Assembly: GCA_946965045.2 (NCBI GenBank)
Contig: OX337235.1
Coordinates: 2,108,001-2,172,000 of the forward strand
Reading direction: 5' to 3'
From: Epithemia pelagica
Lineage: Eukaryota; Protista; Bacillariophyta
DNA length: 64,000 nt
Position numbers and translations under genes: made by a program. This document shows positions 27,409-64,000 of this stretch, piece after piece. The notes under the pieces were generated by a model. It did not search any database. It saw nothing but the letters and a program-made list of their open reading frames with translations, and was not told the origin of the DNA. Numbering within the stretch: the stretch's first letter is position 1; each line of letters begins with the position of its first letter.

Positions 27409-30400
27409 CCAAGAGAAAACTCCGCCGAGACACTGCCCGGTACCCGATTGCCCGTGGAAAGTGCCTCACAACAACAGCAAGCCACATGCCTCCCTCAAGG
27501 AGCATCTAATCACAGAACATAGCGAAACCAACCCAAGCGACTACATGACGACAAAATTCTGCACAACACATGGCTTCCACGTGTGCCAATTATGCGACAC
27601 TCCAACCGCAATTTTCACCACGCCAGGCCATCTAAGACAACACGTAACAAAAAAGCATAATAGAACGAAAACAAACAGGCAACTAGTATCTACTACATAC
27701 AGGCATGCAACACCCGACATCGAAGCCAACTGGAAGAAAAGCCTAGCGTATCTTCATCAACTCCAACCAACGCCACCGCCCTTCAGAAGGTCCATATGGC
27801 ACAAGACAAAGCCCCCCCTGCGGGCAGAATTCTTTGTGACATACAACAACATCATCAACTGGATCCTGGAATCCACACCAACATTGGCGCAATCCATCCT
27901 CAAAGCGACAAGCCTCCCCAAACACGAAACAGATTCGAGCCCGTTTTGGAAACTCCTTTTCTTGTTGGAACCGCTACTCTTGGCGCCAATCAAAAACACC
28001 GTTCACCTGACCTACTCCAACGCATTCCGACACAGACTGTCGCTCCTCAAATCAGGACGCATCGAAGAACTGCACAAAACAATATGGGACCCAACCCCTC
28101 TCCCGAACAAACCAAGATACAACAAGAAAAAAGAGAAACAACGTCAGCATCAACAACAACTGCATCCAAACGAAAAACAACTGCCATCATGGCGCCTCTC
28201 AGCAGCCCAACAGGCGGCAAACCTTGGAAACTATCGAGCGGCACTGAAGAGAATAACAACCAACACTCCAACGGCAACCCTGACGCCCCCAAGAATAGCA
28301 AGATGCCAGCAAGAACTCTTCCCGGCAAGACGACAACCTCCACCAGGAACAAGAGCACAAGGACAAACAAACCTTCCACCTCCGGCAAACCAATACCTGA
28401 AACTCACGGACGAAATGACAGAACTGGCGCTCCGACAAATGAAGCCAGGAACGGCATCCGGACCATTCGCCTCCTGTACCGACGTACTGGTAGCAATGGC
28501 GCTCCACCGAACAACCAAAGCCAAAGACGCCACAAAGCCATACTTTGGCAACGTCAGAGCTCTCCTCCAACTGGTGGTGACCGCCCAAGTCCCACCACAA
28601 ATCCAAACAATGTTATCCAGCAATTATTTCCTGGCATTGCATAAAGACATCAGCAACCCAGAAAAATTACGACCGATTGGAATAGGAACGGCAATCCGAA
28701 GAGTGGCTGCCAAAACAGCCTTGGTCCATGTAACGGACGATATCACGCCCTTGTTATTAAAGGGCGGACAATATGGGATCCAAATCCCAGGCGGCGTCGA
28801 CTTTGTCGCTCAAACCACGGCCATGGCTGTACGAGAATTTATAGACAAACAGGACAACAACACAGAAAAGTCAGAGAACAACCACACAGAAAAAGAACAC
28901 AATCAACCAACCAGAGCGTTGATATTACTTGATTTAACAAACATGTTCAACAACGTCTCAAGAACAGAAGCTCGCAAAATTCTGCTTTCCGACGAGACAA
29001 CAAGTCCCCTCCTCCCTTTGTTCGACCTCTTAACAAGTCACCCATGCAACTCGTGGTACTTCAACGAAAACAAAGAACCGAACCACCTCAAACAAGACGA
29101 GGGATTCCCACAAGGATGTCCACTCAGCCCCCTCTTCTCGTGCCTAGTGCTTCTGGCACTCAAGAACCGGATAAACAAGGAACAAGCTCAACGAGCAGCA
29201 ACAAGAAAAAGGTCAGGAGACACTGGCGACGACGGAAGAGGCGGGAAAGCCCATACAGCATCGATCATGGACGATACGTCCGTTTGCTTACCGCATTGCG
29301 ACCTGCCATGGTTCCTCCACCGCTTCAAGGAACTAGGCGAACCGCTAGGAATCATCATGAACCATTCGAAGACAAAAATCCTCACAACAACAACAAACAA
29401 ACCGTCTGCAGAGACACTGTCGCCACAGGCACAGCAACACATCCAAGAAGCCCTCTCCTTCCTTGCACCCCAAGCACCGGACACTGCCGAAATAACAACG
29501 GGCGTTCGCTTCCTCGGACAGCCGGTTGGATCAAAGAAATTCGCCCAAGCATACATCAACCAAAGGTTAGACAAAATGAACGACACAATGAATCAAATCA
29601 ACCAACTTCAAGACCTCCAAACTCAACATACATTGTTCAAATACTCACTGGTAGCGTCCATCATGCACCTCTTGCCATCGGACATTACCCTCGCCAATCC
29701 AGCCACGGATCCAAGATCCACCCTGTGGTCGAGTGAGACAACAAGAAAAACAGACCAACTAACAAAACGGTTCCTCGCCATGCTTACCTCCCTCGGAGAG
29801 GACGACATCAGCGAACCATCCACAATCATTGCCGCGTTACCTCCAAGGTTAGGAGGACTCGGCTACCAAATGGCAGCGGCCGCTGCATATCCCCGATTTC
29901 TCACACAAATGGTGAGAGCGATTAACCTTGCATCCTCCAAAGCGACACCAATACCAGACGTCCACAGCCGTCACTTCCACAAATGGACCGAAGCAACAAC
30001 TCCAACAATGGTGAAATTCCGCAAAGGACTATCCCTTTTTGCACATGAACACACCGAAGAAGCCCTGTTTACTCCAAGCAGATACGACAGACAAACCCAC
30101 CACAATTTAATGGATCATATCATGAGGGAGCATGTGGTCGAGCGGCTGTTACATGTTACGGCCCCAGACCAACGCATTTTCCTACCTTCCCTACTTTCGC
30201 CCCTAACAAGCATGGCTTTCGCGCTGCCACTGACAGCCAGCGAATTCCGACTCCCAAACCCGGTCTTCAAAACTGCTCTCAAGAGAAAGCTCCGACTCCC
30301 ATTGTTCCCTCCCGACCCAAACAAACCATCACCAAGAATTTGCAAATGCACCGCAAAAAAACCACTCGATGTGAACGGCGACCACTTGTTTTCTTGCAGT

Positions 30401-31294
30401 GCCGCCTCGAAAACGCCCTTGTCGAACGCAATTCGGGACACCTTGTTCGATGTCCTCCGACAAATCGCCCCGGCAGCAAAAGCAGTCGAAACAACCCACG
30501 ATGTCCATATCGAGCCGCCAGGGCTCGCGCCACAACATAGTCGCAACATCCGACCAGCTGACGTCGGAATGTTGTTGCGCCAACCCCATCAAAACCAACC
30601 GTTCCAATATGCAGCCATTGACATTACAATTCCGCCACCACAGAAGCCTCTGCCCATCACTGACCCGTCTGACCATCAAACAATAGCCACTTTGGCCTCC
30701 AAGACGCATCAGGAAGCGGCACGCGAAAAATTCTGTCGGGATCCCAACACAGCAAGACACCTCTTCCATAACGGGGTATACCTACTCCCGTTCACCGTAG
30801 ACCACCTCGGCGGGATTGGTTCATTCGCAGAACATTTGCTCTTTTCCAGCGACCACCAGCCTCACCTCTTTCATCCAGGACAACCACCTCCTTGGCACGA
30901 CCCCCATTTCGGAAAAGACGCTAAACGTAGCAGCGCCCACCCACAAGCATTCGCCCTTTACCAGGAGTCACCCCACGCTCCAGCCAATCTCCTCTCAGCA
31001 GCCAACAAAGAAACCAAGAAGTTTTGCTACCCCGAAGCCCACATCTACTCTCTGGGTCATTTCGCGAAGGCCTCTCTCAGCCACGCTATCGTATCAAGCC
31101 TTGCAATCCATGTCAACAATCACATGGCGGCCATCAACCATTTTCACACCACCAAACAGAAACGACAGACACAGTTACGAAATCTTTCACGGCCACAGTA
31201 TGTGCCGATTACTCCCATCTACTCCCCGGCCCCAATGGTCCACTACCTGCCAACCACGGCAACAGCCCCACTTCTATGCGATCTCCACGCCTAG
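27278..31294 (+). CDS. Retroelement ORF2: zinc fingers + reverse transcriptase + CCHC + restriction-like endonuclease (likely ATG 27401)
   Basis: CPVPDC...HLITEH and CQLC...HVTKKH fingers; RT motifs KLRPIGIG, LLDLTNMFN, GFPQGCPLSP, IMDD, FLG; CKC...DHLFSC; RPADV...AIDITI...EKFC. Confidence 0.92.
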   Translation: MTPTRKTLGATLSHWSRRAAQASPTHAPAMWSRMQNGPINKMSNQEKTPPRHCPVPDCPWKVPHNNSKPHASLKEHLITEHSETNPSDYMTTKFCTTHGFHVCQLCDTPTAIFTTPGHLRQHVTKKHNRTKTNRQLVSTTYRHATPDIEANWKKSLAYLHQLQPTPPPFRRSIWHKTKPPLRAEFFVTYNNIINWILESTPTLAQSILKATSLPKHETDSSPFWKLLFLLEPLLLAPIKNTVHLTYSNAFRHRLSLLKSGRIEELHKTIWDPTPLPNKPRYNKKKEKQRQHQQQLHPNEKQLPSWRLSAAQQAANLGNYRAALKRITTNTPTATLTPPRIARCQQELFPARRQPPPGTRAQGQTNLPPPANQYLKLTDEMTELALRQMKPGTASGPFASCTDVLVAMALHRTTKAKDATKPYFGNVRALLQLVVTAQVPPQIQTMLSSNYFLALHKDISNPEKLRPIGIGTAIRRVAAKTALVHVTDDITPLLLKGGQYGIQIPGGVDFVAQTTAMAVREFIDKQDNNTEKSENNHTEKEHNQPTRALILLDLTNMFNNVSRTEARKILLSDETTSPLLPLFDLLTSHPCNSWYFNENKEPNHLKQDEGFPQGCPLSPLFSCLVLLALKNRINKEQAQRAATRKRSGDTGDDGRGGKAHTASIMDDTSVCLPHCDLPWFLHRFKELGEPLGIIMNHSKTKILTTTTNKPSAETLSPQAQQHIQEALSFLAPQAPDTAEITTGVRFLGQPVGSKKFAQAYINQRLDKMNDTMNQINQLQDLQTQHTLFKYSLVASIMHLLPSDITLANPATDPRSTLWSSETTRKTDQLTKRFLAMLTSLGEDDISEPSTIIAALPPRLGGLGYQMAAAAAYPRFLTQMVRAINLASSKATPIPDVHSRHFHKWTEATTPTMVKFRKGLSLFAHEHTEEALFTPSRYDRQTHHNLMDHIMREHVVERLLHVTAPDQRIFLPSLLSPLTSMAFALPLTASEFRLPNPVFKTALKRKLRLPLFPPDPNKPSPRICKCTAKKPLDVNGDHLFSCSAASKTPLSNAIRDTLFDVLRQIAPAAKAVETTHDVHIEPPGLAPQHSRNIRPADVGMLLRQPHQNQPFQYAAIDITIPPPQKPLPITDPSDHQTIATLASKTHQEAAREKFCRDPNTARHLFHNGVYLLPFTVDHLGGIGSFAEHLLFSSDHQPHLFHPGQPPPWHDPHFGKDAKRSSAHPQAFALYQESPHAPANLLSAANKETKKFCYPEAHIYSLGHFAKASLSHAIVSSLAIHVNNHMAAINHFHTTKQKRQTQLRNLSRPQYVPITPIYSPAPMVHYLPTTATAPLLCDLHA

Positions 31295-42807: not shown

Positions 42808-45048
42808 TTGCAACACGAAGACGATAGGATGAATAGATTGTCGTTGGCTGCGTCATTGTTCATATGTTACATTGTGGTATGTTCCGTTTCCAGTCTGCAA
42901 CCATTACGCGTTGAAGCTCCGATTGATTTGGAGAAAGTCACTGACCGGTTGCCACGCCAAGCCTATGCTGGACGCAAAAAGAGCTGTATCTTCATGTCGA
43001 AAGAGGACAAACAAGAGCCCTTCTTTGCACAAACACAACAGCAGGAAAGAAGGGAACCCGTGGAAATTAGAGAAAAAGTGGAAAACAGAGAAACTGTGGA
43101 TACCACGTACGAAGAGGAAGCTTTGTCAGATGTTGACACACGTGTTCTGAGAGAAATGTTGCAGGATTCCAAGCTTGATCTAGAAACGGAGGAGGATGTT
43201 CGTAAACTTTTGGAACGAGGTACAAGGAAAACAGCGGTTTCATCTGACAATTTCGACACGTCGAATGAAGACTCTGAGTATGACTCGAAAGTCCTTCAGA
43301 AGCTCTCAGATACAAAGCTGTGGAAAGCTGTTTCTGCCAAAACATCAGACATTTTCGAATCGGCCAAATTGTGGATCTCCAACAAAGTTGAACGAGATAT
43401 CAAAACCCTGGCTGCACTTGGCATCTTTGCATGGGATCGGGTTGTGCGTGACGTTGCACGTGCGCTTCCAGCTGCTGCCACACTGGAGAAAAAGACATTG
43501 TTTTTGACGAATACCTCATCCTTCGAGGAACAACCCAGACCAACCGCAGAATCACTTCGAAATGAGTTGAATCGGCCTTCTGATGAGATAAAAAGCGTGA
43601 GTCAAGATATATGGGATATCTTGAGTGGAAAGGCAACAGAAGGAACAGAAGGACGAGGTTTGCGTACAGTTGCCAAAGCCGGCACGGCTAATATTGCTGA
43701 CCGCCAACGACGCGCATACCAACAAACAAAGAAGAAGCGCGAAGAAGAGACTGGCGTTAAAGGTATTCGCAAGATACCAGGGGGAATTATTGATGCGACG
43801 TATGAATTACAACGAGAACTGAAATCGGAAACTAGCACAGCAGGATACAAAACCAAGCCGATCAGAAAAGCTATTGAGGCTGGTGTGGTAGGAACCGGAA
43901 AATACTTACAGGGGATCCAAGATGCGGCGCGGCTCGCGGCTGCTGAGAGAAAGGCTAAACGATTAGAGGCGACTACGAGTGCTTCAGTCCCAACTGACCG
44001 TGATAACACTCCAACTGGCGGAATTGAAGACATTGAAGAGGTAGCACCTGAAATCTCGGAGCTCGAAGATCCAACGGCATCACCGTCTTCATTTGAAAGC
44101 AAGAAGGAGGAACTTCTTGTTGAACTCAGGAATGAACGCATTGCAATGCTAGAACGGCTACTATCTTGCATCCGTCATCCAGAATCCACCTGGTTACAAT
44201 CACAGTTCTTGACAGATGAAGCAAGAGCTCTGAGTCAAGATTCTCTTCGAGAAGTTGCCACATTAATCATCTTGTTGAAAGACGAACTTTCAGAACAAAC
44301 AATAGTTCTTGAAGAAAGCACGCTTGAATCATTAGTTGGACAGTTACGGACTGACCTACGATTTGTGGAAGAGGTGAGGGACACTGTTGTGGATACAGTT
44401 TCCGAATTGATTGGAAACACGCTCTTCGACATTGTTGTTGGAAGCTACGATGCAGAGGAACATGAGATTCCGATTTTGTTGCGACTAGACGAAATCGACG
44501 ACATTTTTTTGAATCCGATCAATAGTTCCTCGCCCACTTCGGAAGCGGTTCCTGAACCACCCGAATCCGAAGTTTGGCGCAACGCCGACGTCATTGATAC
44601 TGAAGACTTAGCCACAGCGAAAGAAGCTGAAGTTGTTGTATCCCCTACTGTTGTGGATGTCGTTACCGAATCTGTTGTGACAGATGATATTTTTGTCGAA
44701 ACTGAAGGTGAAGCTGTTGTCGGTGAAGTTATTTCTGATTCGGTCGTAGTTCCAGAACTTGTCTCGGACGATGCATTTGAAGAAGCAGTTGGAGTAAGAC
44801 AGGTTGAGTCCATAGATATGGAAGAAGACGAGGTCGAAGCAGAGAGACCGTTTATATTAACAGCGGTGCTTCGTTCTCTCGACGTGGCATTTTTTGTTTT
44901 GGAAAAGATTTTCATTGTTGCTATTCCTCGATCTGCTTCGTTTGCATCAACTGCTGCAAGTCGCATTAATGAGGTAAATCAAGGCGGAAAGGGCAAGAAA
45001 GGATGGGAAAGCATACGAAACACAGCAGATCCTAAAGGGCGTTATTGA
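42808..45048 (+). CDS. Hypothetical acidic, helix-rich protein with N-terminal signal peptide (likely ATG 42829)
   Basis: 746-codon ORF with hydrophobic N-terminus MNRLSLAASLFICYIVVCSVSS. No domain recognised. Confidence 0.7.
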   Translation: MQHEDDRMNRLSLAASLFICYIVVCSVSSLQPLRVEAPIDLEKVTDRLPRQAYAGRKKSCIFMSKEDKQEPFFAQTQQQERREPVEIREKVENRETVDTTYEEEALSDVDTRVLREMLQDSKLDLETEEDVRKLLERGTRKTAVSSDNFDTSNEDSEYDSKVLQKLSDTKLWKAVSAKTSDIFESAKLWISNKVERDIKTLAALGIFAWDRVVRDVARALPAAATLEKKTLFLTNTSSFEEQPRPTAESLRNELNRPSDEIKSVSQDIWDILSGKATEGTEGRGLRTVAKAGTANIADRQRRAYQQTKKKREEETGVKGIRKIPGGIIDATYELQRELKSETSTAGYKTKPIRKAIEAGVVGTGKYLQGIQDAARLAAAERKAKRLEATTSASVPTDRDNTPTGGIEDIEEVAPEISELEDPTASPSSFESKKEELLVELRNERIAMLERLLSCIRHPESTWLQSQFLTDEARALSQDSLREVATLIILLKDELSEQTIVLEESTLESLVGQLRTDLRFVEEVRDTVVDTVSELIGNTLFDIVVGSYDAEEHEIPILLRLDEIDDIFLNPINSSSPTSEAVPEPPESEVWRNADVIDTEDLATAKEAEVVVSPTVVDVVTESVVTDDIFVETEGEAVVGEVISDSVVVPELVSDDAFEEAVGVRQVESIDMEEDEVEAERPFILTAVLRSLDVAFFVLEKIFIVAIPRSASFASTAASRINEVNQGGKGKKGWESIRNTADPKGRY

Positions 45049-45607
45049 TTCCCGCGATTTAATCTGATCTCGAGGGCATGCATGTAATTGTGTGCATCCT
45101 GACTCGGGGGCTACCAAGAAAGGCAAAGATGGGCGAAAGCCAAGATCCTTATCTTTGTCTAGTCATTCGAGGTGAGTGCAACTTCAACCATAAAAGTTGC
45201 TGACAAACTTGACAAGACCGGCAAATAAGAGCACCACTGGGGTAGTTCAAGTTTCGAGGCTACCTGCTTAATCCGCGTTTTGTACGAATATCATGCTCAT
45301 TGTTTCTACTCCTAGAACCTACTCCTACATGATTTGAGTGTTGAAGGTCGTGTGTTACTCTACACCCAGAAGGAAAGGCTAGGTGCTCCAGTCATTTTCT
45401 GCTTTTGTGGTAGCAAGCAGAGCAATTGACGTGGTCAGTGAGCTTTTGGGCGACCACAACCTCCGGACCATGGACGAAGTACGTACGCCTCTGTGATGGC
45501 GTGTTGGTATTGGTGCACTTGTGGGCTCAATTGTTGCCGTGTCAAAAGGTCAGATTCGCTCGTTTTCGTGTGGACGCGTTGTTGCCATCAATTCGAACGG
45601 TTTTACC

Positions 45608-47191
45608 ATGAAGCTTTCAACAGCAGCACTTGCGGCTTTCAGCGTCGCATCGGCTTCGGCCTTCGTTCCACAGAGTTTTGGTCGTCGGGTGAGTGTTCTT
45701 TATTAGTTATTACTGCGACCTTGTCGACCCTTCAACATGTCAGATTCAAAATGCCAATTCGCGAACCGTATCTCAGTCATTTGCTTGCAAACTATGTCGA
45801 TAGGGCCTTGTCTTGAACAGCATTGGCGGATGGCAACCTGGTACTGGTGGTCCTCCTCCTGATTATTCTAGCTGGGGCCAATCCACGGCTCCACCTGCCC
45901 CTGCGGCAGTTGCCCCGCCGGCTGCTCCTCCTGCGGCCCCGCCAGCAGCTCCTCCTGCGGCACCTGCCCCTGCTGCAGAGGCCGACGCTAACCAGAACGT
46001 CTTCGGAACCCAGTCTTTGGAGTGGGGAGGAAATGAAAATGACCCAAGTTCCAAAACTGTGCGTCTTCGTGAACGTTTGAATGAGGCCGATACGGAACGA
46101 CGCAAGGCCGAAGAAGAGGCCGAGGCTCGTGAACGTGCTGCTGAAATCCGACGTGAGGAAAGACAGAAAAAGATCGCGTACATGAGAGACATGCCTGACA
46201 ACCAACCCGCTGGAACAGGTAAGCACAATATGTTCATAGTGCCAGTCTATCTATTTGTCGTCCATTCTTACTAATAATTCCAATTGTTGCAGTCGAGGAG
46301 TTCATGTTCAAGGAAGGTGTGCAAGATCAACTCAACAAGCTTGATGAAGAGCTTATCGGTCTTATTCCTGTGAAGAAGCGTGTGAAAGAGATCGCTGCCC
46401 TTCTTGTCCTTGACAAAATGCGACGCAAATTAGGGTTCCAGACCTCTGTGCCCTCCTTGCACATGTCCTTTACTGGAGCTCCAGGCACTGGAAAGACCAC
46501 CGTCGCTGTTCGTATGGGACAAATCCTTGCCAAAATGGGATACTCGCGACAAGGGCATGTTGTCCTTGCTACACGTGACGATCTTGTGGGACAATACGTC
46601 GGTCACACCGCACCGAAGACAAAAGAAATGATCAAGAAGGCCATGGGTGGTGTACTTCTTGTCGACGAGGCTTACTACCTTTACAACGCAGCCAACGACC
46701 GCGATTATGGTCAGGAATCGATCGAAATTTTGCTGAATGTTATGGAAACTCAACAAGATGACCTTGTTGTTGCTCTGGCTGGTTACAAGGATCGCATGGA
46801 CAAGTTCTTTTCCTACATCCCTGGTATGATGTCTCGTATTGGTAACCACATCGATTTCCCCAACTACAGCGCGGACGAGCTCGTTGCCATTGCTGGAGTG
46901 ATGGCACGAGAGCTCGAATATGACATCGAGGAAACCGCGTTCCCTGTTTTCAAGAACTACATCGAGAAGCGTATGAATCTTCCTTACTTCTCCAACGCCC
47001 GTACCGTACGTAACGCCATGGACCGTGCTCGTATGAATGCCGCTATCCGAACGTTCGAGAAGTTTGCTATCCAAGGTGAAAATGGAGGTGTCTGTAGCAT
47101 CCATGACTTGAAAGCTATCACGGCTGCTGACTTCCAAGTGCTTGTTGACGACATTGACAACGCTGACGTCGACAAGCGAATCTTTGCCTAA
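45608..47191 (+). CDS. cbbX: Nuclear-encoded CbbX (red-type Rubisco activase, AAA+) with bipartite plastid presequence, 3 exons
   Basis: MKLSTAALAAFSVASASAFVPQ signal; introns 45689-45803 and 46219-46292; LHMSFTGAPGTGKTT, LVGQYVGHTAPKT, DEAYYL, YFSNARTVRNA. Confidence 0.95.
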
Positions 47192-48398
47192 GGAACAGAT
47201 ATGTATCTATAATCAAAAATAATCCATCAAGAGTTTATCCATACCAGATCTGTAGACAGTCTTTGTCCAGCAATGATTATTTCATCGTATGTACTGCTAT
47301 GAAATATCCTCCCTTGCACATGTTGTCGTTTTTACTCTAGTGCGGTTTTCACTAGATAGTTAAGCGTCCGCTTGATGGATGAAGATTTTCTCCATGGTGA
47401 ACCAAGAGCTGGAGCTTCGTCGTCGCACAATTTGAGGACATCTGTTGATTTTCCCTTTGCAGGATGCTTCACTGGTCTTCCACGACAGAGCTTGCACTCT
47501 ACCAGACTCATCACATTACGATAGAAGTATTCATCCTCTGATGAGAAATGTCATGCAACCACTCAGTTACAGCTTCAAGGACTGTATGACTCTACCGTTG
47601 GTCCTCGGGAGGGATGTAGGATCCCCGCACGTGCCTATTTACTATAGCCCATTTTGTACTGTACTCGATTTTTAGTTTTAGTGTACTTAAGTATTTTAGC
47701 GGTCGTGGGAAATTCCAGCGTAAAACCAGGGTCACAAAATGGACCGAAACGCAACCGAAAGAACAACGAGAGCAGCCGTTGTGCATGAACCAATGAACCA
47801 AGGAACAAACAACCATGACAATCAAACAAGCGAGGCAACAAGCACAACAGCGAGCAAAAGCAACCAACAATCAACCAAAAAGGGCAACCAAGGCAATACA
47901 ATCAACAAACATCAAAGAAGCAGCATGGTAGAACAGCAGCGAGCGAAAAACATAGGTAAAGTGACAGCAAAAGCATCAAGAGAGACAAGCAAAGCATCAA
48001 ACAACAAAACCAAAAGCGATGCAACAATCAACCAAGACAAATGACAAAGCAACAATCAAACAAAGGCAAAAACCCACGCAATAAGCCAACAAAGGCAAGA
48101 AACAAGAATAGAAACAGAGACGACGAAAATGAAACAAACATCAATCCAACAAACACAGAAACATAACCAACAACCAAACAGATAGAACAACAGAGCAGAC
48201 CGAGAGAAAAGAGAAGCAAGACAAAGGTTAGAGATGCATTGATAATGGAAATGGATGCAACAATAAAAAAGAGCGAAGACAACACTTACGTATTGAAGCG
48301 ATCTACACGCAGAGCTCAAGCAACAATCTGCAAAGAAAGGAAGCAGTGAGAACAAAGAAAAGACGAGACAACAATCAAACACAGAAAACTTACCTAGT

Positions 48399-52244
<3,846 letters not shown>

Positions 52245-52570
52245 GGTGGTGGAAAACGCAACAATCAAATGGACGAAACGACGACGACGACGACAACAAC
52301 AACATGAATGACCCCTCATATTTTCACGGGTTGCAAAACAAGGCACTATGTAGCACCTAAGTACTTAGTTTGCCCCTAAATAGTGAGACGCTATGTGATC
52401 TTCTGTTCTTAAATAGTGAGACCCTAAGTGTCGTAAGTAATTTCCCCCAATATGTGACTTTTTAGACTATGTAGAGTAACGAGTTTGAAAAATCAACGGA
52501 CGATAAGCCTAACAGATAATAAGTCCTATGTGACACTTACATCCCCCCTCGGACGCAACGGAAGCGCACG

Positions 52571-52775
52571 ACATCTGCTCCTTGTCGTGATTCTCGTCGG
52601 GGGCACTTCTCGGGGGCCTAACTCCTCGGCGGGCAATAGGTCCTCGTCGTGTACTGCCCCAAATCCGCTTATAGCGGATTTGTTGGGCAGTACACTCCTC
52701 GGACCTATTGCCCTTCTCGGAGTTAGGCACCCCTCGTCGTGCCCCACTCCTCGAATCACTCCGCGGAGCAGATGT
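52571..52775. other. 205-nt rod-like hairpin with seven helices and five symmetric 5x5 internal loops (structured ncRNA or ssDNA candidate)
   Basis: Paired stems include ACATCTGCTCC/GGAGCAGATGT, GTGATTC/GAATCAC, GCCTAACTCC/GGAGTTAGGC, GGGCAATAGGTCC/GGACCTATTGCCC, GTGTACTGCCC/GGGCAGTACAC and CAAATCCGC/GCGGATTTG, with apical loop TTATA. Confidence 0.9.
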
Positions 52776-53494
52776 AGAACTACTACTGCGGTCGACGGGG
52801 TGTTGTGGAATGCATAGCAACAATTGCACCCCACCCCCTAGCGGGGGTGGCTAAGAGGGTTTAATTTCGTGTAGCCACCCCCATCTCTCTTGTGTCCGGT
52901 CTAGTCGGCAGGCATATCTCATTTTCACAACCACGATAACAACACGACAATCAAACTTTGTTGTTGCTGGTGACCTCCTATGATCCCCCCATCATGATCC
53001 GACCATCGTGTGATTCATATTAGTACCATGGTAGTGCATTGTGAGCGGCACAGTGCATGAGGGTCACTCTAGGCAAGGATGAAAATAGTGGCCCAGCTTT
53101 ATGGCACGACACGAGACCATGATAGATGATGGCCCCAAAACCACATGGGAATAGAGGTCCTGCTGTCGATACACTCCGTTACTACTGTTCGGTATATTGT
53201 GTACCATTAGGTGTCAAAACAATGAATGATAAGAGCCATACATCCCTCTGAGATGCTTCGTTCGAAATGGAGAGGCGTTGCTTCCGTATGACCGTGCCAC
53301 GAGGCATGGTGCCTGTGAACCAGCTCCACAATAGACTCAACCTTCATATTTTGGCCATGCAGATGTATCCTACGCTATTGGTTAGAGGCCTATGACTTGC
53401 ACGACAGGTACCAAGTGTCAAAATAGGTGCACAACAACAGGTGCAACACCGAGGTCCGTGTTGTTATCGCGATGGATGGAATGAGATATGCCTG

Positions 53495-53680
53495 TGTTAG
53501 AAACGATTGGGTAAAACCACTCTAAGACAAAATTATAGACAGGTTATGCTACTCTTTTTCCCTTTCACGACATCTGCCCAACTCACTCGTTTTGTCATTG
53601 TCTTTGGAACTGGATGGGCTGGTTCGTAACTGGTCGCGCTTCCGCACCGGGCGATCTCTGTATCGGTTCCATTTCCAACA
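53495..53680 (-). repeat. Copia 3' LTR
   Basis: Direct repeat of 60194-60379. Confidence 0.97.
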
Positions 53681-55920
53681 CCCCCCACTCCAGGCTCAGC
53701 AGGCACTAGGATGTCCCGGAGCTCTTGGAAATGGCCCGTATCTCGATGCTCCTTGGTGAGCAAATCCGCTGGATTGACCTTGCCCGGAATATGGAAGACG
53801 GAGACTTCTTGGGCCTTGATGGCGTCGCGAATAGCTACATGACGCGTGTTTAGATGTCGCAGTCTCTTTGTGATGGCACCGGTACTGCTCCAGTCCACGG
53901 CTCCCCGGTTGTCGTTATACACGGGGATAGCCCGTTGTGTGTCAGGAAGTCGCAATTCCTCCATCAAGTACTGAAGACGCTGGGCCTCCTTGGTCACCAG
54001 ATCCATGGACTTGATCTCGGCTTCGCAGGAGCTACGGCTGCATCGCTCCTCCCTTTCTATCTTCCACCACACGAGTCCTCCTGTCCGTAGAATGAGTGCT
54101 CCCTGCAGTGATTTACATCCGTCATCGCTCACCGTGCGTGTTTCTTCTTCCTCTGGCAGAGGACGCGATGCGTCCTGTGGTCCCCAGTTGGAATCCGTGT
54201 ATTGCTCGCAGAATCGGTGGGATGGCGACGGTACATTCGGCGGCCATGATATGTACCCGTTTATTGCGTTGTCGGTCGATCTCTCGGTGAACGATAAACC
54301 GCGGTCCGTGGTCCCCCGCAAGTATCTCAGCACGTGCTTCGCAGCCTCGAAGTGTCCTGGGCTAGGGATTGTCACATGGCGGCTCAATAGTTTGTGGGCC
54401 ACGGCGATATCTGGTCGCGTGCTGATGGAGAGCCAGGTGAGACCCCCCATGAGTGATCGGTAGGGGCCGACGAGAGGGTTGGTCTCTGGTGTCGCGGTGG
54501 AGTCGGGAATCCGGTCGATGGGCAAGCCGGATCGGTACGGGCTAGTGGCCGGCGTACAGTCACCCATTCCGAACTTCTGCAAGAACTGTTCGATGAATCC
54601 TGGCTGTGATATATGTACTCCAACCCCGTCGTTGGTGGTGCGATACCACTGGTACCGACACCCAAGGAAGTATGAAACAGCACCCATGAAGTCAACGGTG
54701 AGTAGACTACCCAGAGTAGATTCGAACCATTTCTCCGCTTCGTCACTGGCGCTAAAGTAAACGAAGTCGTCCACGTACACTCCGACGTAGATAGGTTCGG
54801 CATGGTCAGGACTGTATCCCACTAACACACATGGGTCGTTCGTACACTTCTGGAAGCCCATTTTCTCGACCAACACCTCAACAAACTTGTCGTACCAGTG
54901 TCTAGGACTTCGACGTAGCCCGTAGAGGGTCTTCTTCAATTTCCAGTAGGTATTCGGTTTGCTGATGGGACAGCCCTTGGGAGGTAGACAGATCACCACC
55001 TCTTCCTCGGGTAGCTCGGGTTGACAAAACGCGTTTTTGCAGTCCCCTTGCTTGGCTACTCGCCCTCTCTCCACAGCCATGGAAATCAAGAGCCGACAGC
55101 TTGTAGATTGCAGCACGGGTGCGTATCTATCTGAGCTCGTCCACACCCGCTCTTCTAAATTCCCTAGGACGACGATTCGACTTTTCGCACGATAAGGGTT
55201 GCCCATTTCGTCGGGCTTGATCGTGAACACATTCATCGTAGGTATGGCCGTAAATCCGGCCTCCTGGTATCGCTCATAGGTCTTCTGGTCGATCTCATCG
55301 AACACATCCATCTTCACCAGGCTCCTATGCTCTTCTCCATATGACTCCGTCCATACCTTCTTATCATTGGCGGTCAGGGAGGGGAGCTGTAGAAGGGATC
55401 CTGGCGCCGTCTTCCGGTCGAGGGTACTCGCCGACACAAAACGACTCACGAGCGAAGTTGGTTCCAAGGTCCACCCTGGAATGAGAGTTCCTCCTTGCAA
55501 CATATCGCGATAGGTATGGGCTAAGCTGGGCAAAGCCACTACCGTTCGTTGATTGTTAGTTGCCGTGTCGCGGCTCACAAACTCCCACTCGCCGCCAGCG
55601 TCCAGTCGCAGTTCCCCTTGTAGGTACCCTTGGTCATCTACTTGGAGTGTGACCGGTTCCCCACTACGCAGCCAGGTTGGCCGCAGTGGATCCGCCAAGC
55701 GTGAAGTATCGATTGGTAGAGGGTCAGCCGAGTCGGAGTCCGGATCGGTGGGAACAGGAGCGCCCTGTTTGAGGTCGTTGACCCCCCCATACCATCCCTG
55801 CGTCGACCTCGAGTGGCCCGTCGGAGGGAGGGTCGGTTGGTTCCACTTTGTACGTAGACGTGGTCCCTGTGGGGACTTGAAGGACGCGTCCCTGTCGACG
55901 GGTGGAGTCACCTGGTACAC
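53533..55920 (-). pseudogene. Copia pol, RT + RNase H portion
   Basis: KSRIVVLG, QGDCKNAF, LYGLRRSPRHW, VYVDD, YTDSNWG, SCEAE, YNDN. Confidence 0.93.
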
Positions 55921-56016
55921 GCCGATAAACCGGCGTCCCTGGCGGATAAATCGATTTCACGAACCCGTTGTCACGAGCCCAGAGTGATAACTGGATCCCC
56001 CCATTGTACACAAGGG

Positions 56017-56174
56017 AAGGGAAAGCGTCGCTGACGCCACGATCCACATCGAGAGAGTTGTCGGAAGAGACGGAGAAGGTCTGAAGGTCCGGATTAAGGG
56101 AAAGCGTCGCTGACACCACGATCCACATCGAGAGAGTAGTCGGAAGAGACGGAGAAGGTCTGAAGGTCCGGATT
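56017..56174. repeat. 79-bp tandem duplication inside copia pol, causing a frameshift between IN and RT
   Basis: Copies 56017-56095 and 56096-56174 differ at 2 positions. Confidence 0.92.
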
Positions 56175-58205
56175 ATAGAAAACAAGACCGTTGCAGAAGT
56201 CGCTCCGACCAACCGCAAGGCCCACAAAACTCTTGGACTCAAACGTTTGCCGACGCCGCTGCCCATCTGCCGGACGGTAGAAATAGCCAATCGAGCCGAA
56301 CGAAAACAGTACCCGATAATCGGGCGCGTGACCATAGAACAATTCCAGGGGACTACTCCATTTGGAGGGCCCAACTTGGACAGGAAGCATGTTCATGCGA
56401 TGGAAAGCTTCCCGCAAAGCCCAATACCAGAAGATACGAGGCAGCTTAGCTTCCGCGAGAAAAGAACGGGCCATTCGAACACCGGTCCGCCAGGTGCGTT
56501 CAACAAGGCCGTTGGATGATTGCCGGCGAGGAGCAGCGGACCGGACCTTAATCCGGAGGCTCTGAAGAAATGCAGCCATGCGTCCCCCCAGGAATCGGCT
56601 GTCGAAATCACACTGGATTGACTTGGGAATGCCGCCGGCGTCAATGATGAACCGCCAGAAGGCATCCTGTAGGTCACCACCCGTGAGACGAGTGAGACCG
56701 TAGGTAAACACCATGCGAGTTGCGCTGTCGACTAGAGTGAGACAGTAGTTGTACCCCCCAGGGGAGGTACCCGAACCATATCCGATGTCCATTCCCACCA
56801 ACTCGAGTTTGCTGCGTTCCCGACGACGGCACGACCCGCGACGGCGTTGGTCAATGGTGGTGAAATCCCCAATGGTGGGAGTGGATTCCTGGGCGTCGAC
56901 TACCTGGAGGCCAGTACCGATTTGGCCGAGCAACGAAAAGTCGGACAAATGACGATTTCCGAACAACCGATGGAGTTCGAATGGTGTGCGGCGGTGCTTC
57001 GAGGCACTACCCGTATCGGCGACATAGCACGAGGGCAAAGTGGACCCGGTCTTGTCCGGAGATTGCTGGGATTGCGACCGAGTCTGGACCCGACGACTCG
57101 TCAATTGGACCGCCCTACCATACTGGACACTCCCATGTGTATCAGAATACGAGGGAGTGAGGCGTGAGTCAGCGGTATCGTCGACAGACACCACAAATGA
57201 AGGGAAGGTGAGGGACATGCCCTGGTCGTCGGCGAGGAAGCTGCACCCAGGCCCGCGTCGACGGTGAACTCGAATGGAAAGCAGGTGTACATCCAAATCG
57301 GGCTCGTGGTAGCAGTCCGCTAAACGAACGCGGTGACCAGCCACAACAAATTCAACGGTGCCGCGGCCGGCAATGGGTACGCGACGTCCGTCCCCCATCT
57401 CCACATAACGGGACGACAGCACTTCATACTCTGATTCAACAAAGAATTGGCAGTCCCAAAACATATCCGCTGTAGCGCCCGAGTCGGGGCACAGTAGAGA
57501 ACGGCCCAACCCCCCATGGGACTCCGACAAGCTACGGCGACAGGTGATGAGATCATTAGCCGGAACAAAGGAGGCGGGTGATGAACCCAGAAATTTGTTG
57601 ACTAAGACATTTTTATCGCTCCCTCGACCATCGATCAGCCAGTCCGTAGAGCCACCATCACCAGCATCAGATGTGGCGTCAGACCAATCATCCTCCACCT
57701 CCGATGTGGATGCGCTCTGGACAGAAAGACAGGAGGTGTCAGCGGGAATGTCACAAGGAAGCTTAGAAGGTCCAATCAACTTACAGGTCCCATCGTCATC
57801 GTCACCATCGGACGAACGAACAGTCTCCACAACCACCGGACTCGCTGAATCATTCGTGGCGCCACTGCGAGAAGCAGGAACGTCGCTGCGGGAGGTGGCT
57901 TTCCGACCGACTGGAAACAACGAGGCTTTCCCCTCTGGATTCAACACGCTATCCTTCTCATAGTCATAACTCATCGCAAAACCACAGTCTTTGAGTATAG
58001 GGCACTTCCAGGTTGGGTGGATCCCACGGCCACCCTTTTTGTTCCCTTTGCGAAGAATTTTGCATATCATACACTTGTACTCGCGGTGCTGTTGTCGCGC
58101 TTCGTCAGCTGTGAGGGTGGCGCCGACTTGGGTGAATCCGTCCGATCCGGAATCGTCAGCGCTGACACGGCGGCCCTTGAGAGTCCCATGGCCGTGATTC
58201 CATCC
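56094..58205 (-). pseudogene. Copia gag zinc knuckle, protease and integrase portion
   Basis: CMIC...H...C knuckle, protease PDSGAT, integrase MDIG...CDFDSRF...SNGLVER. Confidence 0.9.
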
Positions 58206-60121
58206 TTAACTTCCATGGTGCTCCGCGATTTGTAACCTTGTTCGCGGAACTCCTGATGCATGGCGATGAACAACTCCTGCGTAGTCATATTAAAGAGATC
58301 CAACCGTCCACACTTGAATTCCTCCTCGAGTGTTTTCATCGCGTGCCCATAAGGTCCCTTGACAACGAGGTAATAAAACCGAACTCAAAAGTGTAGGTCG
58401 GTGATACCATATTTGTGGGTTTGCAACCGGAGACGCGCCTCCTTTGCCCGACGGTAGAATGTCGTCAAATCCTCCTTGTTCTGATGGCTAAGACGATTCC
58501 ACGTGTCGAAATCCTGGAGGAACGAGCTCGTGGTAGTGGGGTAAGCTATCGCACGCAAGCGCTCCAACGACAAGATGCCATCCCCATAGGATCCTTCTGA
58601 CTGCAACTCTGACAACACTCCGAGAGCGACCGGGTTCCTCTTGGCTTGGATAGATATCACTAGGTGATAGTGGAGTTGTTGGGAAATCTGTTGGTCGTCC
58701 GGATTCCCAGGAGTCGTGGCATGCCCTGGAATGGTAGTGCCATCCTGCAAATGCCAGTGATGCATATGCAGAATATTACGGATGGTCTCGTAATATTGGT
58801 CGAAAAGTTCCCCTGTGAAGGCTGTTGCCGGGAACTCGGGAAATCCTTTCTGTTCCCGACAGAGTTTTCCGTGGGGTGTCTCCGCCAAGGACGAGGATGC
58901 CGTAGAGCCGACGGCCGAAGGGAGAGTCGGAGTTCCCCCCATGGTGGCAGCCCCAGGAGGACGACTGCCGGAGGGACCATCGGAACGATGCAAATCCTGC
59001 ACCACCCGTTGAATGGTGGCGGAGGGAACCGATTGAGCGGCCAGCACGGACTTCAATCGAAGGGTGAACGACGACGGGGCAGGGGACACCGGCTCGGGAG
59101 ACACGGACGGAAGAGGATGTGGCCAAGGACCCTGAGTGTAAGGGACAGTGGCGGCGGGTGGGAAGGGACCGCGGGGAGGCACCAAACGGGGATCCCATCC
59201 AAGGTAACGCACGGCGGCACCATAGGTGGACGCACCGGCAAAGTCGGGGGCCGTGTGGGTGTGGGCCCGGAAGTCGGCAATACGGACCCAGGCGTCGCTC
59301 CAGGAGGTGTAGATGCCCGGATTCCAGCCCTGGCGCACAACGTAGAAATGCTTCCGAGATTGCTGCGACGAACGATCGGGCCCGATATACCCGCGGAGGT
59401 AAGGGTGAGACACACCGCGGTAATCGGCTTGGACCACTGCACCAGCTAAGGCAGAGGTAGACGTCGCTTGATACTGCACGTAGATCTCATTCGGGGTGAG
59501 TGTGACAGTAGGAGGTGGATGGGGCCCCGACGGAGTAGGCGGAGTTGGTGGTACCGCGGGCACAGTATCGGGAATGTTTCGAACTGGGGTACCGAGCTCC
59601 GAAGGCACTGGAGAAACGCCGGGCTGGAGACTGCCCGATGAATAATCGTAGTAGTCGAGGGCCTCCTCTGCCGCTTCAATTGTATCGGCAAAACTAATAC
59701 TGTCTTGAATAACGGATTGGTCTCCGCCTTGAAGGATGACAGCCCGGGTGTAGGGGCTGTAGGCACTCAATGGATCCGAGGACACAGAAGCATCGGGGTC
59801 TGGACGTTGTCGTTCCGTTGGGCGGTTCGTAATGGACGGGGACGAACTCGCGGGTAAGGGGACAATAACCGATTCGGTCACTCTCGGATGCTCTCGAAAT
59901 GATGATGGTGGAGGATCCATAGTACTAGGTGCGAGCTTGTTGGAGGAGGCCATGGTTAATTCACTCAGCGGGTCGTCGGAAATCTCCGAGTGTTCTTCAA
60001 CCGATGGAGTGCTGGGGCGAATGTTAAGATGCTGTAACATACGGCCAAATGGGGTGCGGAGGAGACGAGGTTGTGAAAAGAATCCTCCGGGTGGATCGTC
60101 TGTCGACTGTTGAGACGACAT
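58067..60121 (-). pseudogene. Copia gag portion with in-frame TGA at 58385-58387 and a frameshift between ~58070 and ~58205
   Basis: ORFs 58385-60121 and 58067-58339 share a frame separated by a single TGA; the zinc knuckle lies in the -1 frame. Confidence 0.8.
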
Positions 60122-60193
60122 GTTCAGGGATGGGTCCCTGATTGGGCTTCACCCAGGCACTGAAGAAGGAAATAGCAGTTGGGCTCAGTAACC

Positions 60194-60379
60194 TGTTAGA
60201 AACAATTGGGTAAAACCACTCTAAGACGAAATTATAGACAGGTTATGCTACTCTTTTTCCCTTTCACGACATCTGCCCAACTCACTCGTTTTGTCATTGT
60301 CTTTGGAACTGGATGGGCTGGTTCGTAACTGGTCGCGCTTCCGCACCGGGCGATCTCTGTATCGGTTCCATTTCCAACA
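60194..60379 (-). repeat. Copia 5' LTR
   Basis: Direct repeat of 53495-53680, followed on the minus strand by a PBS-like GGTTACTGAGCCCAA. Confidence 0.97.
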
Positions 60380-60680
60380 GCCTGCCGACTAGAAACAGGT
60401 TATTTTTCTACCAGAGAGATGGGGGTGTTTCAACGAAATTACAACCTCAAAAACACCCCCGCTAGGGGGTAAATAGCACCCTCTTTCTTTCGTGGGTACT
60501 CCCAAGCGCGGGGATAGTTCTGAGTCGCACTTAAAAAGGACGAATTCAGATTTTCTGCGAGTCAGGCGGGATTCACAACTCACAAGGCGCTTGGGGGTAC
60601 TTTCGAGGGTCGTGGGCAGTTTTCGCAGAAGCGCCGTGGGATCGTGCGAGATTGGCTCTCCGTACAACACACGAAGGACG

Positions 60681-62232
60681 ATGGGGAACGTCCATTACCA
60701 GCAAAGATTACGAAGTCTTTGGTTTCTCTTCGTTATTCTTTTCGGTGCTCTATGTATGAAACAGGCGGACGGAACTGAATCTCCGTTTGCTTGGTTTCCC
60801 CGTGAGAGACAAGATGGTTCGGCTACTTCACACCGACATTTGAGGAAAAAGGGTCGCGTTCAATCAGACCTTGATGATTGCTCGGTTTCCATTCTGGACG
60901 ATCGTCAATCTCAAGGCCCACCACCCTGTCGCCTTCCTGGAGATGAGGTATCAACAAGTATGTTCCTTTTGGCCTCATATGGACAAGATCATTTTGCTCT
61001 CACGGCTTACGTGTCCTTGCATCCTTCTTTCTACTCTTCTGGTTCTCTCAACAGTATACAACTACACAAAGCCAAAGCCTCCACCGAACCAACTTGAAAT
61101 AAAGGCTTATGTTGGCTCGAAGCCCAAAAAACCAAGCTTAACGACGATGACAACAGTCTTTGCGATCAGAGAGTGGTCGACGGAACTAACGAACATGAAT
61201 TTTAGGATGTATGGGGGTTATCAAGATAAATATCGTAAAGAAGTTGGCCCGCGGAGAGGCACTCCGTTTGAACGTCCAGAAGGAGGACCGATGGGAAATT
61301 CACAAATGCCTTCATCTAGTAGAGACCGGAACAGGGACAACAACAGGGGCAGTGGCGACCAAGACCGCAATGGTGGACGTAGTCGACGAAGAGTTAACAA
61401 TGTGCCTGCATACGAGCAGATTGGTTCCTCATCAAGTGCACTTCAAACCAGCAACACATCACAAACACTTGAGAATGTCACAAGCTCGACACGATCGCTA
61501 AACCGTGCACAGGTTTTTGACATGTATCACACCAAGAGTGAATCCGAAATGGTAGGGCGTTTCAAGTTTAGGTGGTGGTGGCTCATTCGAATCACGTTGG
61601 AGTGTTACTGGGACGATGATGAATCTAGTGTTGGTAATGCCGTAATGGTTGATATCCACGAAAATATGACCAGAGCCTTTGAGAGCAGAAAATATAACAT
61701 CGAAGAAGCCTTGCAAATGGCGACGAATGATCCAACCATTCGTGTAGGACTTAGTATGCCTAGCCAGGAAGAAGATGACCAAGACAGGGAACCGGCAGTG
61801 GCACCTACATCGGTGAAACCTGAACAATCTGATAGTTCATTAGATCCGAACGAATGGGACTGGCGCAAGTATCTGGGCATGGGCTTACTCCTCGCTACTT
61901 TGGTCTCGGTGGTTGCACTTCGCATCATGGCGACTCGAAGACAACGTGCGCGTGAGCACAAACACTTGTGGGGAAATCTCGCCTCGAAGGAAGGAGTTGA
62001 TGCGCTGCTCAACACAGCTTGGGTGCTGGACGGAAGCAAGATGCAGATTTATGACAAAACGAAGATGGGGTACAAGGACGACGATTCAATATTCTTGGGT
62101 GGTTATGAGCAACGTGAAGCAGTGGTTGGAGCTGAGATTACAGTGACGCATCCAATGACAGAGACCTCTCCCTCGGACCTACCTCGAACGTCGCCCTCGT
62201 TCCTTTCATCGAAGAAGTCGGATCCTGTTTGA
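60681..62232 (+). CDS. Single-pass membrane pre-pro-protein, family member C (RHL motif, Arg/Asn/Gly/Ser-rich spacer), 2 exons
   Basis: Phase-1 intron 60958-61054. Blocks LEIKAYVG, EWDWRKYLG-TM, WGNLASKEGV..LL..AW. Confidence 0.75.
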
Positions 62233-62562
62233 TAGGTTGCTCGTTGGTTCTAAATTCATGATTTATGTGGCTTTCTGTCTGACCGTGAACCTGTGAAAGA
62301 ATTTGTTCTTTTGTCATATCTTCAAGAAAAAGTCTTTGTAGGTGTTTCAGTTTGCGAGAACTCCAATGATCTGAGCTCATTAACCTTCATTCGATTGCGA
62401 GAAAGCATATTACCTATTCCTAGCAAGAATCATGAGATCTCTGAGTTGACAGCAAGGATGTCAGACAAGGCCATATCCCCTTCATCATTGCTCCCGTTGG
62501 CGCCTTTATGTCATGCTTATCTCATCATGTCAGTCTCAGAAGTCTATGTTGTGTGTGTGGTA

Positions 62563-63158
62563 AGGGCTGGGTAAGCCGATCCATGTTCGGCTAAGTAGGC
62601 TCAGTACATTAAGCTACGTAGTACTATTTTCATCACTGTAACAAGTGGGGCGAATGGTCCCACAAATCGAAAACTTGCTGCCACGAGAAACAATGCAATC
62701 CGGAAACCATCACTCGACAATGGTCGAAGAAATCACCCCCATGGCAATAACTTCATGGATAATTGAGCCTAACTGAATCACTTTTAGAATAATACTCTTG
62801 AATACTAGAGCAACTATGGTTTCAATTTGATTCAGTCACCGTTGAGAAATGAATGAGTTAGGAAGGTTTTTGGATTACATCACCAGTATACCTTTTGATC
62901 CAACGCGACAAATCTTCTGTAGCTGCAGAACACAGTAATACAAGCAAACTCAAACAACTTACAGTAGTAGGATGTTGATGCGATGCATCGGTAAATGCAT
63001 GCGGCATCAACGGATCTCGCCGTCATCGTGGAGTGTTTTTGCATTTTTTCGGACTTCCCACCATTTCAGGTATGACGTGTACTATGGGATTTTATGTACG
63101 CTACGTAGCTTTTGTACTGAACCTACTTAGCCGAACATGGATCGGCTTACCCAGCCCT
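62563..63158. mobile_element. Non-autonomous MITE (596 bp) with ~60-bp TIRs and TA target duplication (Tc1/mariner-type signature)
   Basis: TIR AGGGCTGGGTAAGCCGATCCATGTTCGGCTAAGTAGGYTCAGTACA has 1 mismatch in 46 bp; TA at 62561-62562 and 63159-63160. Confidence 0.9.
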
Positions 63159-63451
63159 TAGTGGGGAGATTTCGCAATTCGCGACTGAAAACCGGTTGAA
63201 GTTCCGTCGCGAGCTTGTAGGGACAATGATTACTTTTTTTAATTAAATGCGCTAGAGATACTCCTACCATTTATCTGATGCTACCATAGCCCTCTACTAG
63301 TACTGGGGGTACAAGCTATCCAAACAAAATTCGGGGGTGGTGGGTGGTGGTACAAGTCCTCGTCCTGATGAGTTGGTCGTCATTCGGCATCAACTTTTCC
63401 TCGGCAATGTCTGACACAATATCAAGTTGTTTGCACGCTCTGTCAAAGACG

Positions 63452-64000
63452 ATGAGGCCTCTGGTTGTAGCGGCAATCTGCTTTGCCGCACCACTTGTAG
63501 TCCATGCGTTACAATCTCTGCGTCGACCAGGCTTCAAAGGTTTGCACGGGTCGCGGGGTTTCCACAACAGCCATCAGCTTCCTGCACTTTTCTCAAGTGG
63601 CAATGTATGCGATGAGCCATCGAGTGTGGATTCACTTTTGTCCGATCTAGGAAACCAGCCTGATTCTGGAAAACTCCTTCGAGAGCTTTCCCTAACCGAT
63701 GCGGACGGTAAGAGTGTTCGTCTGGGTGACAAAATGGGCATGGAAAGGGCCATGGTGGTATTTCTTCGACATCTTGGGTGACGTAAGTTCTGGTTTCACG
63801 AAATGGCATCGCTGCATCGGGTGTTGTTTATAAATAACCAAAACATGTCTAACAGCCTTGTTTTCAGCCTACTGCTGGAGCTTTGCTAAGGAATGTTGCG
63901 AGCTCCAGCCCGAACTGTCGTCCCTTGGTGTTACAGGGCCAATTTTCATTTCCCTTGGAGACGCAGAGAAACTCAACAAATTCTTGGAAATCAACACCTT
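63452..64000 (+). CDS. Peroxiredoxin-like (AhpC/TSA_2, SelU/PRXL2 family) selenoprotein, partial; in-frame TGA read as Sec
   Basis: Signal-like N-terminus; VVFLRHLG-TGA-C|intron 63783-63867|CC-TAC-TGC gives FLRHLG-U-P-Y-C-WSFAKE; the frame stays open to the window end. Confidence 0.8.

Follow-up and report, generated by a model that had tools for sequence, protein, structure and literature searches.

A conserved rod hairpin with serial tandem G.A pairs as a probable strand-specific end structure of a Crypton-like element in a diatom

Cryptons are DNA transposons (Goodwin, Butler and Poulter 2003; Kojima and Jurka 2011, PMC3212892), and their CryptonS group is found in oomycetes and diatoms. 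They are described as carrying short direct repeats and as lacking terminal inverted repeats or other terminal structure (PMC3212892); the strings 'hairpin' and 'palindrom' occur nowhere in that paper. Our reading of the literature on Cryptons found no description of a hairpin or palindrome such as the one reported here. To our knowledge, the movement of Cryptons is essentially unknown, and none of the eukaryotic tyrosine-recombinase DNA transposons has a defined recombination site. Among structured DNA ends, the terminal hairpins of parvoviruses and poxviruses are long palindromes whose conserved mismatched bubbles make the two arms functionally different; the bubble of minute virus of mice sets GA opposite GAA. 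Integron attC sites are bacterial structures of 57–141 nt, in which extrahelical bases mark the strand (PMC2727003, PMC3458562).

The window, the whole 64,000-nucleotide stretch of Epithemia pelagica DNA that was analysed, contains a Crypton-like tyrosine-recombinase element at 47592–52783 (minus strand). Its extent follows from end alignments and from BLAST homology to two paralogous copies, L001 and L002, which spans 52786/52788 down to 47592. The element is 5188 nt long plus a second GTAG (about 5.19 kb), and its gene lies on the minus strand. A hairpin of 205 nt (52571–52775) starts 4 nt inside the 5' end. Since homology between the copies stops 4–13 nt past the hairpin at one side and at 47592 at the other, the hairpin and both halves of an adjoining palindrome belong to the element. 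This corrects two points of the initial annotation. It had taken the palindrome beside the hairpin for a reconstructed target; its halves (47595–47618 and 52538–52561) are the element's own subterminal arms, inside the shared homology. It had also considered that the hairpin might be a host structure targeted by the recombinase, a proposal at odds with paralogue homology that runs through the hairpin to the element end. The link between hairpin and tyrosine-recombinase element that it had suggested is borne out, as the same homology places the hairpin inside the element.

The 5' side of the element carries GTAG at 52780–52783, defined by end alignments of the family-1 copies, and the same four bases close the element on the 3' side at 47592–47595 (both minus strand). 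In all three family-1 copies (window, L001 and L002), one end has the arrangement flank-GTAG|TTCTACATC and the opposite end ...GGTAG|flank. In more detail, the sequences there are flank-GTAG|TTCT-hairpin and CCAA(C/T)GGTAG|flank, and the flanks are unrelated among the three copies. Family 4 ends in GTTGT|AAATC and GGTAG|, and GT(A/T)G(T) occurs at the termini in families 2 and 4. By these alignments, the GTAG pair is a short terminal direct repeat, presumed to serve as crossover or target microhomology. Compared by eye, the 5' flank matches the element's 3' end at 14/18 positions in the window and 12/18 in L001, and the match is unconvincing in L002. No LTRs of the tyrosine-recombinase element were found.

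Two arms next to these ends were delimited by folding the joined ends. The post-hairpin arm (52538–52570, minus strand) reads, in the sense direction, CGTGCGCTT CCGTTG CGTCC GA GGG GGGATGTA, and it carries the motif GCTTCC(G/T)TTG, conserved without change in every family (alignments A3 and A5). The 3' terminal arm (47592–47618, minus strand) has the sense sequence TACATCCC T CCC GA GGACCAACGG TAG.

The recombinase gene, with several short introns, occupies 48460–51778 (minus strand), as judged from the ORFs, from homologues and from the match of its ATG to the start of P0001. This ATG (51778) is 793 nt downstream of the hairpin. Homologues place the core-binding region and the box-I Arg in the ORF at 50289–51539 and the catalytic C-terminal piece in the ORF at 49560–50069; a third ORF (48460–49563) forms a poly-Asn/GRPPYE tail (all minus strand). 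Within this tail, a (GTT)n/poly-Asn tract with GRPPYE repeats extends over 48850–49385, with (GTT)n at 49024–49227. The minus-strand ORFs at 48.4–51.8 kb have homologues in one assembly.

Three lines point to this protein being a two-domain tyrosine recombinase, an assignment that is partly model-based. The motifs FR..E, GR(T/G)ARRTG and GRH-x8-Y, with residues assigned by eye, are common to the window, to L004 (a copy from a second family, see below) and to P0008, an intronless homologue. In the window, the candidate active-site motifs, GRTARRTG (the R-x-x-R box) and GRH-x8-Y (His and the nucleophile Tyr), lie at 49671–49781 on the minus strand, and by this reading of the tetrad the box-II His is apparently Arg instead. 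In a language-model search, the C-terminal piece adjoins the Phage_integrase cluster and that of DUF3504, the Crypton-derived domain, with a score of 0.88–0.89 that serves as a lead only. The AlphaFold model of P0008 (pLDDT 72) matches Cre over both domains with Z of 8.8–9.7, and the next matches are XerA, QRICH1/DUF3504, topoisomerase IB, Ndc10, Tn1549 Int, lambda Int and Flp. Foldseek alone on the same model gave no significant match. A Pfam search of the element's ORFs had no hit: no RT, RNase H or integrase was found, and Phage_integrase was not detected.

No protein-coding gene besides that of the recombinase was found in the element, which encodes no replication protein. Because there is no reverse transcriptase and the terminal direct repeats are 4 bp long, the element fits the Crypton class, to which it is assigned by gene content, these repeats and the predicted fold. 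The DIRS, Ngaro and PAT retrotransposons, which have RT and RNase H together with inverted or split direct repeats, were rejected as the class of the element, the 5.19 kb containing no RT.

Several other repeats lie nearby. A young Ty1/copia LTR retrotransposon (53495–60379, minus strand) with RVT_2, rve and Pol_BBD domains has 189-bp LTRs that are 98% identical; it is flanked by the 5-bp target duplication GCCTG at 53490–53494 and 60380–60384, and contains an internal 79-nt tandem duplication at 56017–56174. We rejected the hairpin as a part of this neighbour, which has its own LTRs and target duplication and sits in a different repeat. The copia element splits this foldback/MITE-like repeat of roughly 750 bp with inverted arms of about 90 nt (52833–52922, and 53476–53494 plus 60385–60470). 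This repeat begins 44 nt from the 5' end of the Crypton-like element, and its depth in DNA-like sequencing runs is 20–40x that of single-copy words. The hairpin is not an independent foldback or MITE itself: its ends are not insertion boundaries, and homology continues on both sides, over the 4 nt to the element end on one of them. Elsewhere in the window, a 600-bp MITE-like unit with 48-nt inverted repeats, 98% complementary, lies at 62561–63160, and a 46-nt unit is present in three tandem copies, exact to 98%, at 18562–18699. A 7-kb region at 24000–31000 has a GC skew of about -0.3, an AT skew of +0.3 to +0.5 and G+C above that of its surroundings.

The sequence at 52571–52775 folds as a single rod, both as RNA on either strand and as DNA on the minus strand. 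As RNA, the plus strand reaches -136 kcal/mol (z -16.2) and the minus strand is more stable at -150.9 kcal/mol (z -22.0); the DNA fold of the minus strand has -75.9 kcal/mol (z -15.4). None of the shuffled controls was equally stable. The rod contains seven Watson-Crick helices of 11, 7, 8, 14, 13, 11 and 9–10 bp, and its apex on the minus strand is TATAA. The helices are separated by five symmetric 5x5 loops, which on the plus strand read C-TYSKC-G on each arm, with all 10 loop strands closed by C...G. The folds and the layout thus reproduce what the initial annotation had described from the letters, including the helix lengths and each of the ten loop strands that it quoted. We also agree with its argument that a simple inverted duplication cannot yield the same-sense motif on both arms. 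A gapless palindrome scan gave no match.

On the minus strand, which is the sense strand of the gene, every loop consists of GA-S-GA facing GA-S-GA. The middle base of the five pairs G-C with its partner in 5/5 loops, so that each 'loop' is a tandem G.A/A.G, one Watson-Crick pair and another tandem G.A/A.G. The 20 non-Watson-Crick oppositions in the window loops comprise 17 G.A, 1 A.A and 2 A.C on this strand, with no pyrimidine-pyrimidine opposition, in keeping with the G.A pairing that had been proposed for the minus strand. The plus strand has C.T and T.C mismatches at these positions instead. C-GA-S-GA-G facing itself is a clean natural case of serial tandem G.A pairs and suits structural study.

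The rod does not resemble described structures of this type. Rfam 15, searched over 45000–64000 at E <= 1, gave only a weak snoRNA match elsewhere and none at the hairpin, a result by which we ruled out a described RNA family and a viroid-like or HDV-like rod. The loops are not kink-turns, in which a tandem G.A lies beside a 3-nt bulge and the loop is asymmetric, as opposed to the symmetric 5x5 loops seen here. A coding explanation was rejected as well: the reading frames that overlap the hairpin extend beyond the limits of the element, and indels distinguish the copies.

No other segment of the element is as conserved as the hairpin. Its identity between the window and the two paralogous copies is 98.5% (L001) and 97.6% (L002), while the recombinase exons have 93% and 71%, and the other, non-coding parts 73–83%, apart from the last 120 nt with 95%. 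Further copies of the hairpin were located by repeat finding and by BLAST of the loci of recombinase homologues. Three further families in the same assembly (L004, L005 and L014–L016) carry a homologous rod, with recombinases that are 37–43% identical. In all, 11 of 11 hairpins over the four families lie upstream of a recombinase gene in the sense orientation.

The families allow the pairing to be examined for covariation. Counts were based on a 5-sequence alignment (A3) and on per-sequence layouts; an 8-sequence MAFFT alignment takes no account of structure in the basal part, and its consensus fold was not relied on. RNAalifold recovers the rod from A3, with compensatory changes in 16/82 pairs. 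For the 75 pairs of the main rod, 90.5% of the alignment cells are paired, compared to 34–44% when the 3' partner is slid, and double changes occur in 15 pairs, compared to 2–7 in the slid controls. Six pairs combine full pairing in all sequences with a double change; over 500 shuffles, the corresponding number averaged 1.3 and never exceeded 4. In L004, the basal helix ACTACTAAGGAGAC/GTCTCCTTAGT has no sequence in common with that of the window, ACATCTGCTCC/GGAGCAGATGT, and still pairs. The GA-S-GA design is kept in every family, with 19–26 G.A pairs per rod. A conserved apical core is common to the four families, which are thus not independent inventions, and the covariation represents about four lineages. 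Within this scope, the compensatory changes and the retained loop design agree with the selection on structure that had been claimed from the single sequence.

Among distant homologues from other organisms, no long rod was found: L017 has an 18-bp hairpin only, and L006–L013 are too short to judge. The hairpin of L017, a metagenome contig whose recombinase is 41% identical, lies at 2925–2985, right after GTAG and 1.55 kb upstream of the recombinase gene; this hairpin could represent a short, homologous end structure in a different organism. Metagenomes searched with a protein profile and a DNA pattern of the hairpin core gave no matches. A diverged copy in L003 (8700–8860 and 13100–13185; 65% nucleotide identity) retains the 3' arm of the hairpin alone. 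It resembles an insertion that has been rearranged or has lost a part, because identical host-like sequence of at least 56 nt (TCCTCAACAAGG...GGTTTG) flanks it on both sides.

The two strands of the rod are not equivalent. We counted oppositions in layouts scored neutrally with respect to G.A and G.T, summing one copy per family. On the sense strand, purine-purine oppositions outnumber pyrimidine-pyrimidine ones by 116 (92 of them G.A) to 27 (binomial p = 2e-14), and G.T outnumbers A.C by 29 to 8 (p = 8e-4); the families are related, and both p values therefore overstate the independence of the counts. The direction of both asymmetries is identical in each family. By these counts, the gene-sense strand is the strand selected to fold. 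RNA parameters favour it by 15–17 kcal/mol. With DNA nearest-neighbour parameters, the two strands of the joined ends are nearly equal (-95 vs -92 kcal/mol), because these parameters include no bonus for sheared G.A pairs; the preference for one strand thus rests on the known chemistry of G.A pairs and on the RNA parameters.

Joining the 3' end to the 5' end in silico lengthens the rod by about 27 bp in every family. The sense sequence across the joined ends of the window is ...CCAACGGTAG|TTCTACATCTG..., read from 3' end to 5' end. In this joint, TACATCCC pairs with GGGATGTA, with tandem GA facing tandem GA, and GGACCAACGG pairs with CCGTTG(C)GTCC. The crossover TAG|TTCT falls into a partly paired internal loop opposite CGTGCGCTT, below the basal helix of the hairpin. 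The extension holds further G.A pairs, and its arms covary between families: TACATCCC/GGGATGTA of the window corresponds to TACCTAGGCAA/TTGCCTAGGTA in L004, and family 4 has TGAAGG/CCTTTG at the place of CAACGG/CCGTTG in family 1. The helices on either side of the crossover are no obvious inverted copies of one binding site.

A natural joint of this kind is present in L015 and L016, where a miniature derivative comes head-to-tail after a full element of 5.35 kb. These non-autonomous family-4 derivatives (L015:8784–9545, 0.76 kb; L016:8785–9792, 1.0 kb) combine the hairpin end with the 3' end. They keep only the first 310–337 nt, which contain the hairpin, and the complete 3' end, and they stand directly behind full copies at two unrelated loci. 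The natural joint L016:8755–9040 folds as one 278-nt rod (DNA z -10.1). The content of the miniatures, together with the conservation profile, indicates that the hairpin end and the 3' end are the parts required in cis.

Taken together, the conservation, the covariation, the purine-purine loops and the pairing between the ends indicate selection for pairing as such, for the loops of the sense strand and for end-to-end pairing. On these sequence grounds, we consider it probable that the hairpin is a cis-acting, folded and strand-specific end or recombination structure of the element. The element ends would be joined in an excised circle or a head-to-tail copy, upon which the 3' terminal 27 nt would pair with the 33 nt after the hairpin to form one rod of about 270–290 nt. 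The crossover GGTAG|TTCT (GTAG|TTCT) would then sit between two helices, within a small internal loop that is partly unpaired. Such a rod would be stable on the gene-sense strand only, where the interruptions are G.A and G.T as opposed to C.T and A.C on the other strand. We infer that the recombinase would recognise this folded, strand-specific rod as its recombination site; binding to the rod and folding in vivo are both parts of this proposal. The repeated G.A loops would supply the choice of strand as well as repeated docking surfaces.

Which form the rod takes is a more tentative matter. By analogy to integron attC and CTX-phage attP(+), single-stranded DNA, or a strand-biased extruded form, would be the likeliest, and single-stranded DNA is the one we would name first, with confidence that stays clearly on the low side. 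The wider proposal, that the site at which Crypton-type transposons of this lineage recombine is single-stranded and recognised by its structure, with exchange of that strand only, is a possible but speculative extension.

It is conceivable, if unlikely, that the rod acts in duplex DNA. The ten to twelve same-sense heptamers CGA(G/C)GAG would then be an array of arm-type sites for the recombinase or a host factor, and the palindromic spacers would serve symmetry or cruciform extrusion without a single-strand fold. The heptamers are highly conserved and run in the same direction throughout, tyrosine recombinases such as lambda Int use arm-site arrays, and the base of a cruciform resembles a Holliday junction, the natural substrate of this enzyme class. 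However, binding sites need no palindromic spacers, and yet the spacers covary in a way that preserves pairing; moreover, the central bases of the motif are complementary to the facing motif in 5/5 loops. A cruciform requires both strands to fold, whereas the excess of G.T over A.C (29 vs 8) favours the fold of one.

Sequencing reads bear on copy number and on transcription of the region. Logan contigs of four runs (X1, X2, X3 and X7) were placed on 49300–53300. X1 and X2 resemble genomic DNA, with contigs of up to 0.5 Mb, and in both the hairpin core is an exact 145-nt unitig at approximately 5.7x the depth of single-copy pieces, which agrees with several identical copies. The depth of X3 is very uneven and covers the hairpin at a level like that of the 5' part of the gene; X3 may be an RNA run. 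No canonical splice joint and no circle or single-strand junction was seen in the contigs over 49300–53300, a stretch that runs from within the gene to beyond the element's 5' end.

These observations have to be weighed for a structured RNA, which we regard as distinctly unlikely as the working form. Transcripts of the rod could stem, for example, from a circular or tandem copy or from read-through, and they would act as a scaffold or cofactor of the recombinase, as a regulator of the element, or as a small-RNA silencing precursor or decoy. The stable strand is indeed the gene-sense strand, by the margin of 15–17 kcal/mol in RNA parameters, motifs with tandem G.A and G.U pairs are well known from RNA, and the contigs of X3 over the hairpin, with a depth unlike that of the DNA-like X1 and X2, suggest that the region may be transcribed. 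On the other hand, the hairpin is 4 nt from the element edge and 793 nt upstream of the ATG, where a transcript from an internal promoter cannot include it. X3 has no canonical splice joint, and the hairpin no Rfam match. All loops are one invariant motif, so that the specificity of a guide could not be encoded, and pairing of the two ends across the joint is more naturally a feature of a DNA joint.

A role in replication or priming, with the hairpin as origin or self-priming end for the copying of an excised single-stranded or circular form, is very improbable: the hairpin is a terminal palindrome of great length whose mismatches are conserved, and the 5–10 or so copies of its core and the head-to-tail arrangements are compatible with copy-out, but the recombinase is the sole protein-coding gene found, with no replication protein beside it, the palindrome centre is not at the element boundary and thus provides no unfolded hairpin telomere, and the 11 copies, all in the same orientation, give no sign of flip/flop isomers. 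That the rod is a neutral by-product, a duplication palindrome with drifted mismatches or with G.A pairs that escape mismatch repair, is scarcely credible, for although palindromes are common in repeats and sheared G.A pairs are poorly repaired, the hairpin is 98% identical where the coding region is 71%, its changes are compensatory, the same loop design recurs in all families, and the rod is retained in the miniatures.

Returning to the reading that we favour, a folded and strand-specific end structure, the element can be compared with the systems described above. It shares with Cryptons a gene content of only a tyrosine recombinase without reverse transcriptase, a length of 4–5 kb, a stramenopile-type genome as host, 4–5-bp direct repeats at both termini (GTAG here) and insertion at short matching targets. 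The termini of CryptonS elements are mostly TATGG, in contrast to GTAG in this element. Unlike published Cryptons, it has a 205-nt subterminal palindrome and mutually pairing arms of 27–33 nt at its ends. The family thereby offers a concrete candidate site for these transposons, a conserved rod that contains the crossover and has a clear strand bias.

The closest likeness in architecture is to integron attC (PMC2727003, PMC3458562), which also is an imperfect palindrome used by a tyrosine recombinase, with structure taking precedence over sequence, strand choice by non-Watson-Crick features, and a crossover next to a central stretch that is left unpaired between two helices. The present structure differs in being eukaryotic and 205–290 nt long, in having its strand marked by about 20 tandem G.A pairs, and in that its single-strand recombination is a proposal made from the features described here. 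It is not a member of attC, with which it shares the architecture alone: it lacks an R/L box consensus, has G.A pairs where attC has extrahelical bases, and comes from a eukaryotic host. By analogy, it may work like attC without being one.

The use of one specific strand, folded or circularised, as the recombination partner of a mobile element with a tyrosine recombinase is also known from CTX-phage attP(+), a forked hairpin for XerCD, and from the Vibrio strand-biased circularising integrative elements (PMC9345347). Both come from bacteria, their structures are much shorter, and a purine-purine zipper is absent from them. The hairpins of parvoviruses and poxviruses serve linear genomes as replication origins or telomeres, and their palindrome axis coincides with the genome end; the present element has its axis 107 nt inward of its boundary and lacks a gene for a replication protein. 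If the rod is recognised as a fold, structure-specific single-strand recombination would extend from bacteria to eukaryotes, and the rod could give a sequence-independent recombination module for algal genome engineering. If the single-strand reading is true, the rod would be a eukaryotic counterpart of attC and CTX attP(+), with a new principle of marking the strand, by a purine zipper as opposed to extrahelical bases.
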